DNA of 64,000 nucleotides, taken from Mobula hypostoma. Lineage: Eukaryota. The stretch is from the NCBI RefSeq assembly GCF_963921235.1, contig NC_086109.1, positions 12,524,001 through 12,588,000 of the forward strand. The letters are read 5' to 3'. Below the pieces are notes generated by a model that saw only the letters and a program-made list of their open reading frames with translations, had not been told where the DNA came from and did no database searches. The first letter of the stretch is position 1. The number at the start of each line of letters is the position of its first letter. The position numbers and the translations under genes were made by a program. Shown piece after piece: positions 7,001 through 53,429 of the stretch.

Positions 7001-7282
7001 ATCTTGCGGTAGTTTACCTTGGAAGGACTATCTTAATGAATGGCCGAAAAAATTACCACATTCACACCCAGCCACCGAGAGCAGATCGAAAGCAGGAGAC
7101 ACTCTGGTGAGAGACTGAGGTTTGAACTGCTGTGCCAAAAGGCTGTTGATTCTTTGAAAAGTGGTGACAGCATACACTCCATGCTCCTGAGTGAAGATCC
7201 AACAACAGAAAATCCAGCACGCCACAGTTGCTCAGTTATACTCCATTGACCATCATAAAGAATCAAACCCTGCACTACTTAC

Positions 7283-7603
7283 CCATGCTGTTGACTTCAA
7301 TCACATTTCTGCAGGTCCTGACACTGTTGGAGATGGATACGTTGACCATTTCACTGGACATTGTTCCATTAACATTTGAGGCTTTGCAATAATATAGATG
7401 ATTTTTGTATTTTAAGGATTGACAGCGTAGATCCAGTTTATTTGTGTCAGAGATCTTTGAATCCACAGATGGGGTCTTTTCATACCATGAGTACTGAATG
7501 GGAAGGGATCCATGGACAGACTCACAGGACACTGATACAGAGTCCCTACAACTTGAGCCACTTGTTGGTGGTGAAAATCGAAGCAAAGGAACAGACACGG
7601 GTT
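7283..7603 (-). CDS. Gene B second (membrane-proximal) C2-set Ig exon: EPVSVPLLRF...SCES...YSWY...YYCKASN...TCRNVIEVNSM
   Basis: 321 nt, phase 1-1, acceptor ttttccacag, donor gtaagt; canonical Cys-Trp-Cys; paralogous to the three other C2 exons. Confidence 0.93.
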
Positions 7604-8252
7604 CTGTGGAAAAGAATCAGTGAACTTCTGAAAATCAAACACTCCGAAGATTTCAGCAATTCTGTATCTCAACCAGGACCCACCAGTTTGCAAACTGAGC
7701 AGATCATCTTCCTCTCTGTGTCTCTGCATCCTCACATCTGCCTGAACTGCCATGTCTGACATTATCCCTGAACACAGCAGGTCTCCAGATCAGAACAGCA
7801 TTGATGACACAAAGTCTGTGTCAGTGTGAAAATCAGTTACAATCTCTCTCAGACACAAGGAGACAGTCTAAAGTGGCACCTAACAGTTTGACTTTGCAAT
7901 GGCGGCATTTGCGTGTGTCCAGGAAAACCCCCATAATATGAAAGCAGGAAATTGTCAGATATGTACAAAATGAATGGTGACTTTACGGACAGAGTATAAT
8001 TGTGATTTGTTTCAGTGACCTACAGCAGGAAGGGATCCCATTAGTACTGATATCTATTGAGGGAGAGTATAATTGTGATTGGTTTCAGTGACCTGTAGCA
8101 GGAAGGGAACCCATTAGTTTTGAGATCTATGTGAGACTGGAGAATCAGAAAGACCATAGACCATAGGGTCATAAGAGATAGGAACAGAGTTATGCTATTC
8201 ACTCCATTGAGTCTGCTCCACCATTCCATCATGGCTGATTTAATATCCCTCC

Positions 8253-10285
8253 ACGTGACAAGATAGGCCAAAGCCAGCATTGTTTCCTGAAAGGAAAATC
8301 CTGCCTGACAAACATACTGTAATTCTTTGAAGAAATTACAAGCAGAGTAGACAAAGGAGATGCAGTAGACGTGCTGCACTTGGATTTTCAGAAGGCCTTT
8401 GATAAGGTGCCATCCATGAGGCTGCCTAGCAAGATAAGAGCCCATGAAATTATAGGGAAGTTACTAGCGTGGGTGGAGCATTAGCTGGTCGGTAGAAAAC
8501 AGAGAGTGGGAATAAAGGGAATCTGTTCTGGCTGGCTGCCAGTTACCAGTGGAGTTCCACAGGGGTTGGTGTTGGGACTGCTGCTTTTTACGATGTATGT
8601 TAATGATTTCAACTACAGTATTAATGGACTTGTGGCTAAATTTGCCAATGATACAAAGATAGGTGGAGGAGCGGGTAGTGTTGAGGAAACAGAGAGCCTG
8701 CAGAGAGACTTAGATAGTTTAGGTGAATGGGCAAAGAAGTGGCAAATGAAGTACAATGTTAGAAAGTGTCTGGTCATGCACTTCGGTGGAAGAAATAAAC
8801 AGGCAGACTATTATTTAGGTGGGGAGTGAATTCAAAGTGCAGAGATGCAAAGGGACTTGGGAGCCCTTGTGTAAGATACCCTAAAGGTTAACCTCCAGGT
8901 TGAGTCAGTTGTGAAGAAGGCGAATGCAATGTTGGCATTCATTTCTGGAGGTATATGTAGAGGTTTCTTCTTTTATGTTATTGCATAGGCTAATTAAAAT
9001 GGATTCTTTGTTATGTTATAATTAAAATGGCTTCTTTGTTATGTTAACAGCTGAGAAAGTTCTCCCGCTAGCAGCTTGTTTGGATTATGTTATTGATAAG
9101 AGTGTGAACAAACCAATTGGGATAGATGTTATTCTTTCTAGTGTGTCTGTGAGTTCGTGTGATGCGCGGGTTTTTGGGCAGAAGGCGCGATGGAGAGCAA
9201 GAGAATGGACAAGGTGCTGTGAACCAATTAACGAGGTCGAACCCCGAGCAGGAGTCCGAGATCCAGGGTCTTTGGCGAGGAGAGGAGATGGAGACAGACT
9301 CGTGTGGTGTGTCTGGTCCACCACTGTGGTTGGTCCCAGGTGGCAGGTCGAGGTGGTCAGAGGGGATCGAATGGTGAAGAGAGGATGTTACTAGAGCTCC
9401 AACTGTCGTGCACGAAGGGATTGAACTTTGATAAGTGTGGCGCTTTATATTTTATCTCTATTAATTATATAGTTCCAGTAATATCTATAAACTGTCATTC
9501 ATTTGATTGTATATGGTGTATTGTCTGTTATTTGGCAGGGTGGGGTACATCACACAGCATCCACACAAACTTAATTACCCAGTTTGGCGGGTCCGAGGGC
9601 TGTTTCCCTAGACGACAGTGAGTTGAGCGACCCTGAGGCTTGCCGGGGGGCTACATATAGAATAAATATAGGGATGTGATGTTGAGGCTCTATAAGGCAT
9701 TTGTGAGACTACACTTGGAGTATTGTGTGCAGTTTTGGGCTCCTTATTTTAGAAAGGATATACTGACATTAGAAAGGGTTCAGAGATGATTCACGAGAAT
9801 GATTCCAGGAATGAAAGGGTTACTGTATAAGGAACATCTGGCAGCTCTTGGGCTGAATTCCCAGGAATTCAGGAGAATGAGGGGGGAATCTCATAGAAAC
9901 GTTCCGAAGATTAAAAGGGCTGAACAGATTAGATATGGCAAAGTTATTTACCATGGTAGGGGATTCGAGGACAAGAGGGCACGACTTCAGTATTGAAGAA
10001 TGTCCTTTTAGAACTGAGATGCAGAGAAATTACTTTAGTCAGAGGGTGGTAAATCTGGAATTTGACGCCCTGAGAAGCTCTGGAGGCCAAGTCACTGGGT
10101 GTATTGAAGGCAGAGATAGATAGGTTCTTGATTAGCCAGGATATCAAAGAGTATGGGGAGAAGGCAGGGGAGTGGGGATGACTGGAAGAATTGGCTCAGC
10201 CCATGATTGAATGGAAGAGCAGACTCGATGGGCCGATTGGCCTACTTCTGCTCCTATATCTTATGGTCTTATGGTCTTATGGTCT
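8253..10285 (+). mobile_element. CR1 LINE RT/3' fragment interrupted by a solo LTR
   Basis: WLPVTSGVPQGLVLG..FANDTKIGG; (ttatggtc)n 3' tail at 10260-10285; CR1 sequence resumes directly after the LTR. Confidence 0.88.
8956..9655. mobile_element. Solo LTR (TGTAG...CTACA) with 4-bp TATA TSD
   Basis: Inverted termini TGTAG/CTACA; tata at 8952-8955 and 9656-9659; inserted inside CR1. Confidence 0.85.
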
Positions 10286-10948
10286 AAGTCAATTCTCCTG
10301 CCTTCTCTCTGTATCCTTTGATGCCCTTACTAATGAAGAACCAATGAACTTCCATTTTAAATATATCCAATGATTTGGCCTCCACAACTGCCTGTGGCAA
10401 TGAAATCCACAGATTCACCAGCTTCTGGCTGAAGAAATTCCTCCTGATCTCTACTTTAAAGGGATGTCCTATTCTGAGTCTGTGCCTTCAGGTCCTATAT
10501 ACTCTTACTGTTGAAACATCGTCTCCACATCCACTAGGCTGTTCAATGCCTGATAGCTTTCAATGTGATCCTCCCTCATTCTTCTAAACTCTGATGAGCA
10601 CAGGCCCAGGGCCTTCAAACACTCTTTATTCATTAGGGGAGTGTGACGTCACCTGGAATTTAAAATCTGAGTCCCTTCAGAATTGATGTACAGAGAGTTC
10701 TTGGGGTACAAGTCCATTGCTCCCTGAAATTGGCAACACAAGTGAACATAATAGTAATGAAAGCATTCAGCACGTTTTCTTTCTTCATTCTGCATGTTAG
10801 AGACTAAATCTGACAAGGCATTTTGTAGCTTCATAAAACTCTGGTTAGGTTATATTGAGAACATAATGCGTACTTCTGGTTGCAACACAATAAGAAAGAT
10901 GTTGAGGTTTTGGAGAGGGTAAGGAGGCTCACCACAATGGTACCAGGG

Positions 10949-11246
10949 GTGACACAGTAGCATAATAGTTACCACAATGCTTTACAGTACCAGTGACCTG
11001 GGTTCAATTCCTGCCACTGTCTGTAAGGAGTCTGTACTTTCTCCCCTTGACTGTGTGCATTTCCTCCGGGTGCTTTGGTTTCTTCCCAAATTCCAATGAC
11101 CTACCAGTTGGTAAGTGAATTGGTCATTGTAAATTGTCCTGTGATTAGGCTATGGTTAAATCTGGGGATTGCTGGGCGGTGTGGACCGAGGGTTGGAGGG
11201 TTGATTCCATGGTGTTCCAAACAAACCAACAAATAAATAAATAAAT
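10949..11246 (+). mobile_element. tRNA-derived SINE, near full length
   Basis: A/B-box-like head (gacacagtagcata..gggttcaattcc), conserved core, (aaat)n tail. Confidence 0.75.
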
Positions 11247-11259
11247 ATATGTTTCCTGA

Positions 11260-11720
11260 ATAGGAGTGTATTAGTTATGGGGAGAAGTTTGAAAAACTTG
11301 GTTTGTGTTCGCTTTATTGTAGGAGGGTGAGGAGAGATCTGATAGAAGTCTATAAAGTTCTAGAAGACCATAGATAGGGAAGATAGTCAGAATCATTTTC
11401 CCAGAATTGAGATATCAAATCAGTGTGAGCATAGTTTTAATGTAATCGGGGAAAAGTTTAAGGATGTTTGCGAGACAAGCTTTTCTTTACACTGTGGGTA
11501 GTGACTGCATGGAACACACAGTCAGACCAGTTGGTGAAAGGGATATCATGTCAATATTTAAGAAGCTTTTGGACATGGACATGAAAAGGGAGGAATTGGA
11601 GAGATATGGATCACATGCAATAAGATGGAAATAGCTTAGAATGATATCATGGTCAGTGTAGACATGGTGGGCCAAAGAATCTATTCTTGTGCTGGACTGT
11701 ATCCCAAGTTCTCCCTAACC
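11260..11720 (+). mobile_element. CR1 3' fragment
   Basis: Degenerate LEKLGL..R RLRGDLIEVYK..; ends in a CR1-type 3' UTR. Confidence 0.7.
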
Positions 11721-12277
11721 CCATTGCTCTATTTCCCACCAGAAATGGGCTGGATGGGGAGACTGGCTGCCGGGAAGTGTATGGTCTATGGGTGCCGGCG
11801 GGTGGTTTATGAGAGCACAGAGAGAGTGCAGGGTAGGGGTGGGAGTGACTAATCCACGAAGCAGGGATGGGAAACAGAACAGTCTGCCCTGGGAGGACTG
11901 AACACAATCTGTTGTGATCTGGATCTGATTCCCTTTCTATGCTTTCTGAAGTGTTTAGACCATGTGTAACACTTGTTTCTCATTGACCTGTTAATAGCAG
12001 ATGATTAGTTTTAGTCTGAATGCAAACCACTGACAGAGTAACGTTCCATACGGTTCAGAAGCAGGATAATGTGCTGAGCCTCCCACTGGAAACCAGTGGG
12101 TCAGACCCCACACTGGATGAGAGCAACTGGAGTGGGGTTTCCTGAAACAGGCACCCTCCCCATGGGGGCCTGCACTGTAACAGACCGCGGAATATCGGTG
12201 CTGCCCTGACACTTCCCAGAGAAAACATGAATCAGACACTTCAGTGGAAAGATAAAGTCAATCAATGGGAAACCTAC

Positions 12278-12598
12278 CATCAGATACTTGTAGATACACG
12301 TTAAATATTGGAGAATTGCCAGATGATGTAATTACACATATGTAATCCCCTGTATCGTTAGAGTCAAGGTGCTCCATAGTAACAGTAAATATTCCCTGGG
12401 ATGTGTTATCTCTGATTGTCATTCTTCCATACTGCTCATTTTGCCCATTTGTATTCACTCTGGATGTGCATCGGCGATCCCATATGCGGCACAAAAACTT
12501 TGAGTTTGAGCGATATATTAGTGCATAGTGCCAATCGATTGTGATCGCTCTTCCCACAACTCCTCTCACTTTATCTTCTGCCCATAAAGCACCTGAAA
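12278..12598 (-). CDS. Gene B second V-set Ig exon (divergent; canonical Cys->Trp and Trp->Leu)
   Basis: 321 nt (315 with the inner acceptor), phase 1-1, donor gtaggt, open frame; ...ITIDWHY...KFLCRIWDRRC...DTGDYIC. Confidence 0.9.
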
Positions 12599-13587
12599 CT
12601 GAGGGAGAAGTTTTTCAGAATATGGACTGATAAAATCAAATTTACACAAGCAGATTCTAGACTCTAGATTCAAAATTGTTTAATGTCATTTCCAGTGCAC
12701 AAGTGTAAAAGAGAATGAAATAATTGTTACTCTGGTCTACTGCAGCACAAAAACACAAAAGATAAAGAACATAATAATAATAAACAAAGATGTTTTATTT
12801 AAAGCTGTCACTGTGTTCTAAGGAATCTGCCCACATTGTCAATTGCTATCATTGAATTCCACATGGACTGAGAAGACAACAGCATCGTCCCTCATCACGT
12901 GCTCACAGTTCTTCACAAGTAAAGATTTTTATTTGACTGGAGTCATCATTGTCACTGCCCACTAATGTCTCAGCGTGTTTCCACATTTCTGAGTCAATAG
13001 ATTACTGATCCAGTCCCATTCCAGGCAGGTGAGCACAAGATCACTGGTGAGTAACTTACTGGAGGTGATTGTGTGAGACAGGATCTACCTGAATTTGCCA
13101 AAACAAGATCTGATTTGGGATTGTCAATGTGATTTTGGGCATGGGATATCCTCTTTCAATCAAATATGGCTGACTTTTTTGGAAGAGATAATATAAGGGA
13201 CTGCTGAGGTCAGGGCAGTAGTCTTTAGCCCATAGAGCTTAGCAAGGCTTTTGACAAGATCTTGCATTGTCGACTGATCTGTAATGTGAGCTCGCATGGT
13301 GAGCTAACTGGATGGATACGGAATAGGCTTGGCGGAAGGGATAAGATTGTGATTGTGAAGTCTGACAACATCAGACTTTATCACCAGTGGTGTGCCATCG
13401 GGATCAGTGCTGTTATTCATTAACCACTGTTATTGTCATTGATATTAATAATTTGTAATGATAATGTAAGTCACATGATTAATAAGTTTCAGATGACACT
13501 GTAGTGTGGTGGACAGTGGAAAGAGTTGTCGAATTTTATAATGGGATCTGGAAAATGAACCAGTGTTCAGCCACGTTACTCTGTACC

Positions 13588-18127: not shown

Positions 18128-18448
18128 TGGTGCCATTGATTTCTGTCACGTAGCTGCAGATCTCTCCGTTGTTGAAGACTGTCACATTAACCGTTGCACT
18201 GGATCTTGCTCCAAGCCAATTCAAGGCTCTGCAGTAATATCGATGGTGCTGCTGGTTGAAGGATTGACAATGTAAAGCCAGTTTATTGGTGCCTGATACC
18301 TTTTGATACCCAGATGAGGTTTCTTCATACCAAGTATACTGAATGGGAAGAGATCCCTGGAAACACTCACAGGAAACTGACACTGAGCCCCCGAGACGTG
18401 AGACATTTGCTGGTGACAGATATCGAAGCACAGGAACAGACACAGGTT
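18128..18448 (-). CDS. Gene B first C2-set Ig exon: EPVSVPVLRY...SCECFQ...YYCRALN...ICSYVTEINGT
   Basis: 321 nt, phase 1-1, acceptor cccacag, donor gtaagt. Confidence 0.93.
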
Positions 18449-19386: not shown

Positions 19387-19707
19387 CAACAGATACTTGT
19401 AGATCTACGTAAAATAATGGATCATAACCGACTGTTGTAATTCCACAGCTGTACCATCCTGTATCTCTGGTTTGAAGATTCTCCATAGTAACAATAAATA
19501 TTCCCTGTTCCGGGTTATCTGTGATTGACACTCGTCCACTCCGTCCGTGTTGCCTATTTGTTTCCACTAAAACTGAACAGTGACGAGTCCGTCCACGGCA
19601 CCAATACTTTGTGTGTGAGCGGTACGTTGCTCCATAGTGACAATCGATTGTGATCACTCTTCCCACAACTCCTCTTACATATTTCTCTGCCCACAATGCA
19701 CCTGAAA
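19387..19707 (-). CDS. Gene B first V-set (CD300/pIgR-type) Ig exon
   Basis: VSGALWAEKYVRG..IDCHY..KYWCRGRTRHC..DTGWYSC; 321 nt, phase 1-1, donor gtaggt. Confidence 0.93.
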
Positions 19708-20545: not shown

Positions 20546-20871
20546 TAATGCAAACTAATATTTTTGAACATGACGATGAAAACAGGTGCAGGTCACGTCC
20601 AACATGTGGTCCATGACACCACAGCCAATGATTTTGGTCTGAGGTGCAGTCAGTGCTGTTACTGTGTCAGCTGTGTCAGTACTCTCTCCCCTGTGTCAGT
20701 ACATTGTGGGTTCACTTCCCACTCCAGAGTCCTGAGCAGAAACCCAGGGCTGACCTTTCAGTGCAGTACTGAGGGAGAGACGCAGTGTTGAACTATCAAT
20801 TACCTCCTATCAGCCTTTCAAATATTCACAAAGTTCCCAACGAATTAACTTGGGATGCTCCCAGATTTTTT

Positions 20872-22708: not shown

Positions 22709-22745
22709 CAGGTAGGAAACCAATCAGAATAATCGAAGGCCACAT
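22709..22745 (-). CDS. Gene B leader (signal peptide) exon: MWPSIILIGFLP
   Basis: ATG at 22745, 37 nt, donor gtgagt, phase 1; paralogous to 60095-60131. Confidence 0.9.
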
Positions 22746-22819
22746 CATTTTATTCACAGGATCCAGCTCGGATCTATCTGTCCTCAGAGAGAAATAACTG
22801 TAAAATAAAATGGAAGAAG

Positions 22820-43105: not shown

Positions 43106-43426
43106 TGTCAGAGACTCGTAGATGTACGACAAATGTTGGATTGTTGCCAGATGTTGTAATTCCACATCTATACCACCCTGTATCTCCAGAGCGAAGATCC
43201 TCCACAGTAACAGTAAATATTCCCGGCCCTGGGTTATCTGTGATTGACCGTCTTCCACTCTGTCCTTGTGTCCCATTTGTTTCCACTAAAACTGTACACT
43301 GGTGATCCCACATGCGGCACCAATACTTTGTGTGTGAACGGTACATTGGTGCATAGTGACAATCGATTGTGATCGCTCTTCCCACAACTCCTCTTACTTT
43401 ATCTTCTGCCCATAAAGCACCTGAAA
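43106..43426 (-). CDS. Gene A second V-set Ig exon
   Basis: ALWAEDKVRG..IDCHY..KYWCRMWDHQC..DTGWYRC; phase 1-1, donor gtaagt. Confidence 0.93.
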
Positions 43427-44409
43427 CTGAGGGAGAAGTTCTTCAGAAAACGAACAGGTAAATTCAAACTGACCCCAAAAAAAATATTTTAATCAGCCAC
43501 CACACTGTACCAAAAGTATGCCCACTTCATCCATTAATACAAATGAATACCACATAGACTGAGAACAGAAACAATAACATCATCCCTAATCACGTTCTCA
43601 GGATGTTGCAAAGGCCCTCACAACCACTGATTTGCTTTTGATCAGAGCTGCCGTTGTCAGTGGCTGACTTTTATCTTTCCTCATTTCTGAGTGAATTTCA
43701 GATTCCAGTCTCACTCTAGCATCCTGACAATAGATTCTCAGATGCCCCATCCAGTGCCTATCCTGAGAGACTGCAAACACTGTCCAAGGAGCTCCCTGTC
43801 ACTGAGATGAGGGCCTCCTCTCATTAGATTAGATTTGATTCAACTTTATTTTCATTGTGCCGAGTACAGATAAAAAGCCAATGAAATGCAGTTAACATCT
43901 GACCAGAAATGCAAAGAATAGTGTTATTTACAAAACAACTGCGAATCAAAAGTAAGTGCTACAGCACACAGATATAAAAGTACTGAGACAGTACAATATG
44001 GGTGCAATACTGCTTAGCACTGTGATGTGAGGTTCAGCAGGGTCACAGCCTCAGGGAAGAAGCTCTTCCTGTGCCTGCTAGTGCGGGAGTGGAGGCTCCT
44101 GTAGCACTTACTGTAAGGGAGGAGAGTAAAAAGTCCACGGTTAGGGTGAGATGCATCTTTGATAATGCTTTTCACCCTACCCAGGCAGTGTTTATGGTAG
44201 ATGTTCTCAATGGTGGGCAACTGGGTGCCGATAATCCACTGGGCAGTTTTCACTACATGCAGATGGCAAAACTCCATTGGTATCACTTGAAAGAAGAGAA
44301 GAGGAAATATGCCCAGTGCCCTAGGCAGTCTTAATAATCCTTGTGAGAATATACAGTATTGTCTGGCTATTACTAGCATGTGGTGTGTGATCTTGCTGCA
44401 CTCAGTGGA

Positions 44410-53152: not shown

Positions 53153-53429
53153 CTGAAGGGGATAGTCTCAGATGTGGGGTAAAAGAAGCTATTTAATACA
53201 AACAAATATACTAAGAAAATAATTTCAAAAAGAGCTGCAGGTCATGTCCTAGGATATGTCTGATGACCTCACAGTTAATGATTTTGGTGCTGTCGGTGCT
53301 GCGACTATGCTGGCTGCAGAAATTCTAGGGTCACTTTCTACTCCAGAGACCCAAGTGGAACTCCCAGCTAACGTTCTGGTAAGGAGTGTGGCAGTGCAGT
53401 GGATGCTAACTTTCAATTAACCCAGACCA

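Follow-up and report, generated by a model that had tools for sequence, protein, structure and literature searches.

The exon at 12278-12598 (minus strand) of the window, the whole 64,000-nt stretch of DNA that was analysed, encodes the third Ig domain (V2) of a four-Ig inhibitory MDIR/pIgR-like gene arranged as leader, V1, C2a, V2, C2b, stalk, transmembrane segment (TM) and ITIM tail. V2 is a natural, transcribed V-set domain, common to two species, in which a disulfide Cys is replaced by Trp (residue 22) on a Leu background (residue 35). Given that it belongs to an intact, transcribed four-domain gene and that the same residue pair is found in a stingray ortholog, the pair is best read as a tolerated variant of the core and not as the mark of a dying exon. 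It is suggested, with a probability of roughly 70%, that V2 is a tolerated V-set domain lacking the B-F disulfide: Trp22 would pack into the core next to Leu35, the C-C' disulfide would stay in place and Cys87 would be a buried thiol. The features on which this reading draws are as follows.

22709-22748, minus: leader exon (MMWPSIILIGFLP, then the G of a split codon); donor CTG/gtgagt, phase 1; resembles the leaders of P0007 and P0001
19387-19707, minus: V1 exon, 321 nt; canonical CD300/pIgR-type motifs TIDCHY, KYWC and WYSC; equals residues 441-547 of P0151
18128-18448, minus: C2a exon, 321 nt; 100% identical to residues 548-654 of P0151
12278-12598, minus: V2 exon, 321 nt, phase 1-1; Trp22, Leu35, Cys36-Cys43 pair, F-strand Cys87
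12531-12533, minus: TGG, Trp at the canonical B-strand Cys site (residue 22); at the end of an exact contig of the RNA-type run X9; same residue in P0007
12492-12494, minus: TTG, Leu at the canonical C-strand Trp site (residue 35); inside the exact X9 RNA-type contig
7283-7603, minus: C2b exon, 321 nt; protein 90% identical to the stingray ortholog
1447-1525, minus: stalk exon (GPIHFCENTVTESTTTTQGEESKSDK); ends in phase 2
670-761, minus: transmembrane exon (PTYIIVLSVVGTLLILLVICLLCYLKRKNR); the ITIM/ITSM tail lies beyond the window start

An internal V exon of a four-Ig receptor gene

Two proteins place the exon. A HMMER search of the full protein library recovered P0007 (XP_072886821.1), a 597-aa protein of the red stingray Hemitrygon akajei made up of leader, V1, C2a, V2, C2b, stalk, TM and a tyrosine-motif tail, whose parts map in order on window exons at about 19.7, 18.4, 12.6, 7.6, 1.5 and 0.7 kb. 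A search by region then recovered P0151 (XP_062921374.1), the M. hypostoma RefSeq protein named 'uncharacterized protein LOC134355435', residues 656-761 of which are identical to the translated V2 exon. The seven exons inside the window join into a stop-free precursor of 498 aa that equals residues 441-925 of XP_062921374.1 from its residue 14 onward. Every Ig exon of the gene has 321 nt and phase 1-1, and at the junction ahead of V2 the end of the C2a exon (...EINGT and the A of a split codon) yields the Ile that precedes SGALWAE. As in the MDIR family, the ectodomain is modular (leader-V1-C2a-V2-C2b, with Pfam V-set matches on the V exons) and the protein has the features of a type I membrane receptor, with the TM exon at 761-670 and a tail, outside the window and read from the RefSeq protein, that contains IVYADL and VTYADI. 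In itself the gene is ordinary, an already annotated member of a large, fast-evolving and known receptor family.

The earlier note had assigned the exon to a 'gene B' and had compared it with three paralogs. Both proteins map across the neighbouring exons of the window, so the exon is internal to the four-Ig gene and no separate gene begins with it. The three other V exons do exist, but the one at 19707-19387 is the V1 of the four-Ig gene, whose leader lies at 22748-22709, and the supposed paralogs thus include the gene's own first domain. V2 as the first V domain of a gene of its own was considered and rejected, the proof that the exon is internal making the search for an own leader moot; no leader exon for such a gene was found, and the conserved block at 12828-12905 has no phase-1 ATG-to-GT segment. 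The sequence SGALWAE at the start of V2 is left over from the V-C2 duplication and does not work as the tail of a signal peptide.

All four V exons are preceded by a conserved block of about 60-80 nt (12828-12905, 43519-43600, 20579-20638 and 53228-53288, minus strand). The copy before V2 starts with ATG and is without a phase-1 donor, and the block may be what is left of an ancestral leader or may serve as a splicing element.

Several further observations concern the models and exons around V2. XP_062921374.1, with 1025 aa and 8 Ig domains, looks like a fusion of two adjacent four-Ig genes (window 7283-60131, minus strand). In the upstream gene, a leader at 60131-60096 is followed by V and C2 at about 53.1 and 52.4 kb, by a second V and C2 at 43.4 and 41.9 kb and by an activating TM with Arg at 38370-38278, and the downstream gene is the inhibitory one containing V2; the RefSeq model passes from the upstream C2 (...LSHG) straight to V1 at 19707, omitting both the TM at 38370-38278 and the leader at 22748-22709. 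In Mobula birostris the upstream half is modelled alone (P0188, 502 aa). Repeat insertions (window 8145-11330) bring the intron between V2 and C2b to 4.7 kb, compared with about 1.2 kb in the upstream gene; these repeats occur elsewhere in the window in both orientations and reach very high depth in every run, RNA-type included. The motif VSCECFQ of the C2a exon (18128-18448) corresponds to VSCESFQ or VSCESLQ in the related proteins checked, which gives C2a a fifth, odd Cys directly after the B-strand Cys. A link between the unpaired Cys87 of V2 and the extra 'SSC' Cys of C2b was also considered, and was rejected, since every C2b-type domain carries the 'SSC' Cys irrespective of how its V2 reads.

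Sequence state, splicing and conservation of V2

The translation of the V2 exon (minus strand, 12598-12278) is free of stops and reads SGALWAEDKVRGVVGRAITIDWHY...SKFLCRIWDRRC...DTGDYICVITSS...LQVSD, the V2 segment also being given as ...GRAITIDWHYALIYRSNSKFLCRIWDRRC...DTGDYICVITSS...LQVSD. Its acceptor (...ctccctcag/TT) and donor (GATG/gtaggt) are canonical and of phase 1-1. The two substitutions described in the earlier note, TGT to TGG at 12531-12533 and TGG to TTG at 12492-12494, are real: the codons were re-read and XP_062921374.1 agrees with them. Re-reading also bore out that neither the frame nor either splice site is disrupted, that the F-strand Cys and the C-C' Cys pair are kept and that the three other V exons in the window (19707-19387, about 43426-43107 and about 53152-52833) keep both residues, all three having TGT on the B strand and TGG on the C strand; the F-strand Cys codon is TGT in all four. 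V2 thus has Trp22 in place of one Cys of the canonical B-F disulfide of CD300/pIgR-type V domains, with the other, Cys87, kept, and it reads FLC where such domains have the YWC motif. Cys36 and Cys43 (KFLCRIWDRRC) lie at the family columns for the C-C' disulfide and would form that bond.

The substitutions might instead reflect an error of sequencing or assembly, or an allele private to the sequenced animal. Nothing was found in favour of such an error or allele; the organism A RNA-type runs described below could stem from the same animal as the assembly. Either origin is extremely improbable for three reasons: first, the same residue pair is present in the protein of another species; second, exact RNA-type contigs match the V2 exon, the X9 contig being without differences and the RefSeq protein identical; and third, two separate single-base changes 39 nt apart would be required. 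The window itself contains no N.

Four runs were aligned on window 7150-13100 (5951 letters), the label 'RNA-type' being a guess where it is used. X9 and X10, both RNA-type and from organism A, have zero depth in unique intron bins and contigs on the exons, and hold 41% and 37%, respectively, of the sampled words of the V2 exon. An exact X9 contig at 12412-12533 spans the Leu codon and has the Trp codon at its very end. A 154-nt contig of X10 places 124 letters on 12278-12401 with 0 differences and its first 30 letters on 7574-7603; this joint between 7603 and 12278 skips 4674 bases with GT..AG ends on the minus strand and falls exactly at the predicted exon borders. The contigs across the V2-C2b joint have only 28-30 letters on the C2b side, 30 letters being the contig overlap length. 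The same 12278-7603 joint is found at high depth in X13, an RNA-type run from another organism, where it possibly comes from a paralog. V2 is transcribed and is spliced to C2b at canonical sites.

The splicing data raise the possibility that V2 is a cassette exon, giving four-Ig and three-Ig (V1-C2a-C2b) forms, so that the odd domain would be present in part of the receptor pool. Skipping of V2 would suit the common length and phase of the Ig exons, and a model of an activating paralog in M. birostris (P0223, 'Fc receptor-like protein 5', 332 aa) joins a C2a-type directly to a C2b-type domain (...EINGT/NPVSVPLL..., with no V2 between), which either sets a precedent for a V2-less form or reflects a gene model that passed over the V2 exon. 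The de Bruijn contigs end exactly 30 letters inside C2b, which is what more than one upstream partner would produce, but paralogs with the same C2b start can equally cause such a break; moreover, no skipping joint was observed in the stretch 7150-13100, which is without C2a at 18128, and RefSeq has the inclusive form only. Alternative inclusion is considered rather unlikely, and it is compatible with, not opposed to, V2 being a tolerated domain.

Over the whole protein the stingray ortholog is 80% identical to the Mobula gene, with no gaps, and its V2 reads TIDWHY...KYLC, that is, it has the same Trp/Leu pair as the V2 of the window. By domain, the identity is 85% for V2, 90% for C2b, 79% for the tail, about 80% for C2a and about 67% for V1. 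V2 is not the least conserved domain, given its 85% against the values for V1 and the tail.

These comparisons bear on a further explanation, that constraint on V2 is relaxed and that a misfolded or dispensable domain is becoming a pseudo-exon, which persists since phase 1-1 skipping is harmless. Compared with the in-window paralogs, V2 has a pairwise dN/dS of 0.79-1.0, the closest of them giving about 1, and among the other V exons it is 0.73-0.74; however, values are high in all V domains of the family and the range of 0.73-1.0 throughout the in-window V exons does not discriminate. In the Trp lineage the branches exceed those of the sister V2-type domains by a factor of 3-4, and together with the dN/dS values these long branches fit either relaxed constraint or the remodelling of a ligand-facing domain. 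The searches by region found no M. birostris protein carrying Trp22 and no annotated counterpart of V2 from that species. The homologous exon contig of X13 differs at 17/193 positions and the adjoining intron contig at 41/552, but the X13 contigs may derive from a paralog. Against these signs stand the 107-codon frame, open in two species at 85% identity with no indel, the splice sites, which are canonical and used, and the V1 of the same gene pair, which is more diverged than V2. Beside the open frame in two species and the splicing seen, the signs of looser constraint are weak, and it is improbable that V2 is on its way to a pseudo-exon. The decaying exon proposed in the earlier note is mostly contradicted by the open frame, the canonical sites, the RNA-type joint, the inclusion of V2 in RefSeq and the 85% identical stingray domain.

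The predicted fold enters the same argument. Pfam V-set (PF07686) scores V2 at 30.6 bits (cut-off 26), against 44-54 bits for the in-window paralogs. AlphaFold2 was run with a 71-sequence family alignment and with the internal V domain at 43107-43424 as control, and returned a mean pLDDT of 90.1 and a pTM of 0.80 for V2, against 93.3 and 0.85 for the control, with the same strand pattern; one of the five V2 models has a pLDDT of 78.8. The lower Pfam score and the slightly lower AlphaFold2 confidence could be counted towards relaxed constraint. Foldseek placed CD300lf first among the matches to the predicted V2 (TM 0.85-0.88), followed by pIgR D1, and by sequence the closest solved relatives are pIgR and CD300f. 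The V2 sequence is thus read by Pfam, AlphaFold2 and Foldseek as the same V-set fold, predicted and not solved; the AlphaFold comparison called for in the earlier note gives V2 the fold of the control, and its figures are no measure of stability and say nothing reliable about it.

The two core positions in the family

The census covered 677 V domains with all three key columns, from 247 family proteins. At the C-strand position these have Trp in 426, Leu in 118, Phe in 87, Ile in 29 and Val in 12, so that the Trp of YWC is not strictly defining for the family, being absent from 37% of its V domains. The B-strand position is far more uniform, with Cys in 666/677 and Trp in only two, the V2 of the window and that of its Hemitrygon akajei ortholog; the remaining exceptions (Tyr in 4, Phe in 2, and Leu, Asp and Arg in 1 each) all come from teleost pIgR-like proteins. 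The V2-type domains listed from Mobula and Hemitrygon have Leu at the C-strand site, except for one Trp, one Ser and a few Phe, and where V2-type domains from Mobula, Hemitrygon and Hypanus otherwise retain the two Cys pairs, the residue is nearly always Leu and occasionally Phe. The C-strand change from Trp to Leu is ordinary and the B-strand change from Cys to Trp rare. The earlier statement that both hallmarks of the Ig core are lost is therefore an overstatement for V2: the rarity of the Cys to Trp change stands, whereas Leu is normal in the stingray V2-type clade and in the solved domains D2 and D3 of pIgR. More generally, what looks like a 'lost hallmark' beside a few paralogs can turn out to be normal for a subfamily.

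The V2-type clade also lacks the Trp of the F-strand motif DTGWY.C (V alignment column 84; window 12345-12347), where it has Leu, His, Pro or Val, with Asp in the V2 of the window and Tyr in that of the stingray ortholog. V2-type and V1-type domains differ at two Trp positions, not one.

The two core positions look coupled. Every one of the nine hydrophobic or aromatic replacements of the B-strand Cys lies on a non-Trp C-strand background, compared with 241/666 of the Cys-bearing domains (one-sided Fisher p = 1.2e-4, a test that ignores phylogeny, over about 6 lineages), and this family-wide pattern suggests coupling of the two positions. The compensatory core repack of the earlier note survives in spirit through this co-occurrence, though not in its detail, as Leu is not a lost hallmark and came first.

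The order of events is read from the tree, in which the V2 domains of the window and of the stingray ortholog are sisters (support 100/94) within a well-supported clade of Leu/Phe-bearing V2-type domains, with the Trp-bearing internal V exon at 43.1-43.4 kb just outside that clade. Since the pair is nested among Leu/Phe-bearing domains and the Trp-bearing exon lies just outside, the change to Leu came first and that from Cys to Trp later. In a denser tree, residues 317-422 of the Hypanus sabinus protein P0180 join the two V2 domains (support 100/95). P0180 is a likely ortholog of 556 aa that ends in the stalk (...TTSPEM) without a TM, being either a secreted form or an incomplete model; it has the orthogroup markers APIY, ITSS and IF.xYLQVSD, and its V2 carries Cys22 and Phe35. 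Trp22 has not been kept in every lineage, given this Cys and Phe pair. Hemitrygon and Hypanus are both dasyatids. The history of Trp22 is one of three: gain plus reversal, two gains, or a gene conversion patch from Hypanus paralogs, with which P0180 has the motifs VTINCHY and FCH in common. A reversal from Trp22 to Cys is possible because the F-strand Cys87 is kept.

With V2 taken as a tolerated domain, a stepwise route can be proposed. In a first step, the C-strand Trp would have changed to Leu in the ancestor of the stingray V2-type domains, and in a second, on this Leu background, a single base change from TGT to TGG would have turned the B-strand Cys into Trp. The indole of Trp22 would then occupy the core space next to Leu35, the Cys36-Cys43 disulfide between strands C and C' would still staple the domain and the F-strand Cys87 would stay behind, buried and unpaired. 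Core packing, free thiol and stability are the inferred part of this route; the sequence state, the gene structure, the splicing of V2 to C2b, the residue pair in the stingray ortholog and the co-occurrence across the family were observed. A bolder version holds that the core Trp has in effect been shifted from strand C into strand B in place of the disulfide, and that V2 obeys an epistatic rule of the CD300/pIgR-type fold, by which the B-strand Cys can give way to a bulky hydrophobic residue only once a smaller residue stands in for the C-strand Trp, a rule followed independently in about 6 fish lineages and, in stingrays, through two gains or one reversal. This version is offered tentatively and is on balance doubted.

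For protein engineers and for the study of Ig-fold evolution, V2 lends itself to a test with four variants (wild type, Trp22Cys, Leu35Trp and both changes combined), which would show how an Ig core manages without its disulfide. The novelty of the core variant and of the co-occurrence rule is modest.

Comparison with known receptors

Among the closest known receptors are MDIR2, MDIR3 and MDIR5 of the clearnose skate, Rostroraja eglanteria, in which CD300/pIgR-type V domains likewise alternate with C2 domains and of which there are inhibitory and activating forms. With V2-C2b of the stingray ortholog as query, MDIR3, MDIR5 and MDIR2 match at E = 1.6e-174, 2.9e-139 and 2.4e-63, respectively, and the similarity extends to the window gene through this ortholog, 80% identical to it. 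All the skate MDIR V domains examined keep the B-strand Cys and the C-strand Trp, whereas the ray V2 has Trp and Leu. MDIRs have been described as relatives of CD300, TREM and pIgR, and CD300 V domains as having the YWC motif and two disulfides (PMC3031540). CD300/CMRF35-like receptors (CD300lf, CD300a) match the predicted V2 best in structure and share the two-disulfide design with YWC, but, unlike the ray gene, they have a single V domain that always carries the canonical Cys pair and Trp.

For the C-strand position there is a parallel in mammalian pIgR, whose domains D2 and D3 (solved in 5D4K, 7JG2 and others) are V-type, have the extra C-C' disulfide and carry Leu at the Trp site (KSLC in mouse D2, KYLC in mouse D3 and KFLC in human D3, the last being the motif of the ray V2). 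Given that these solved domains carry Leu, the change from Trp to Leu is compatible with a folded domain. In contrast to the ray V2, mammalian pIgR keeps the B-F disulfide, and in contrast to the ray gene, which alternates V and C2 domains and has an inhibitory tail, it consists of tandem V-type domains, with an Ig-binding D1, without C2 domains and without an ITIM tail. The RefSeq label 'pIgR-like' is consequently one of resemblance and not of orthology.

Domain 1 of CD2 and the V domains of the SLAM family are Ig V-type domains that fold without the B-F disulfide. They belong to unrelated subfamilies and are without a compensating C-C' disulfide, and none is known to have Trp at the Cys position. 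The same rare loss of the B-strand Cys to a bulky hydrophobic residue, here Tyr, Phe or Leu, occurs in V domains of teleost pIgR-like proteins (Albula, Clarias, Hemibagrus, Ictalurus, Xiphias, Phoxinus and Cirrhinus). These differ from V2 in that none has Trp there, in that they arose in separate lineages and in that some have also lost the F-strand Cys; like V2, they always have a residue other than Trp (Leu, Phe, Ile or Val) at the C-strand position.
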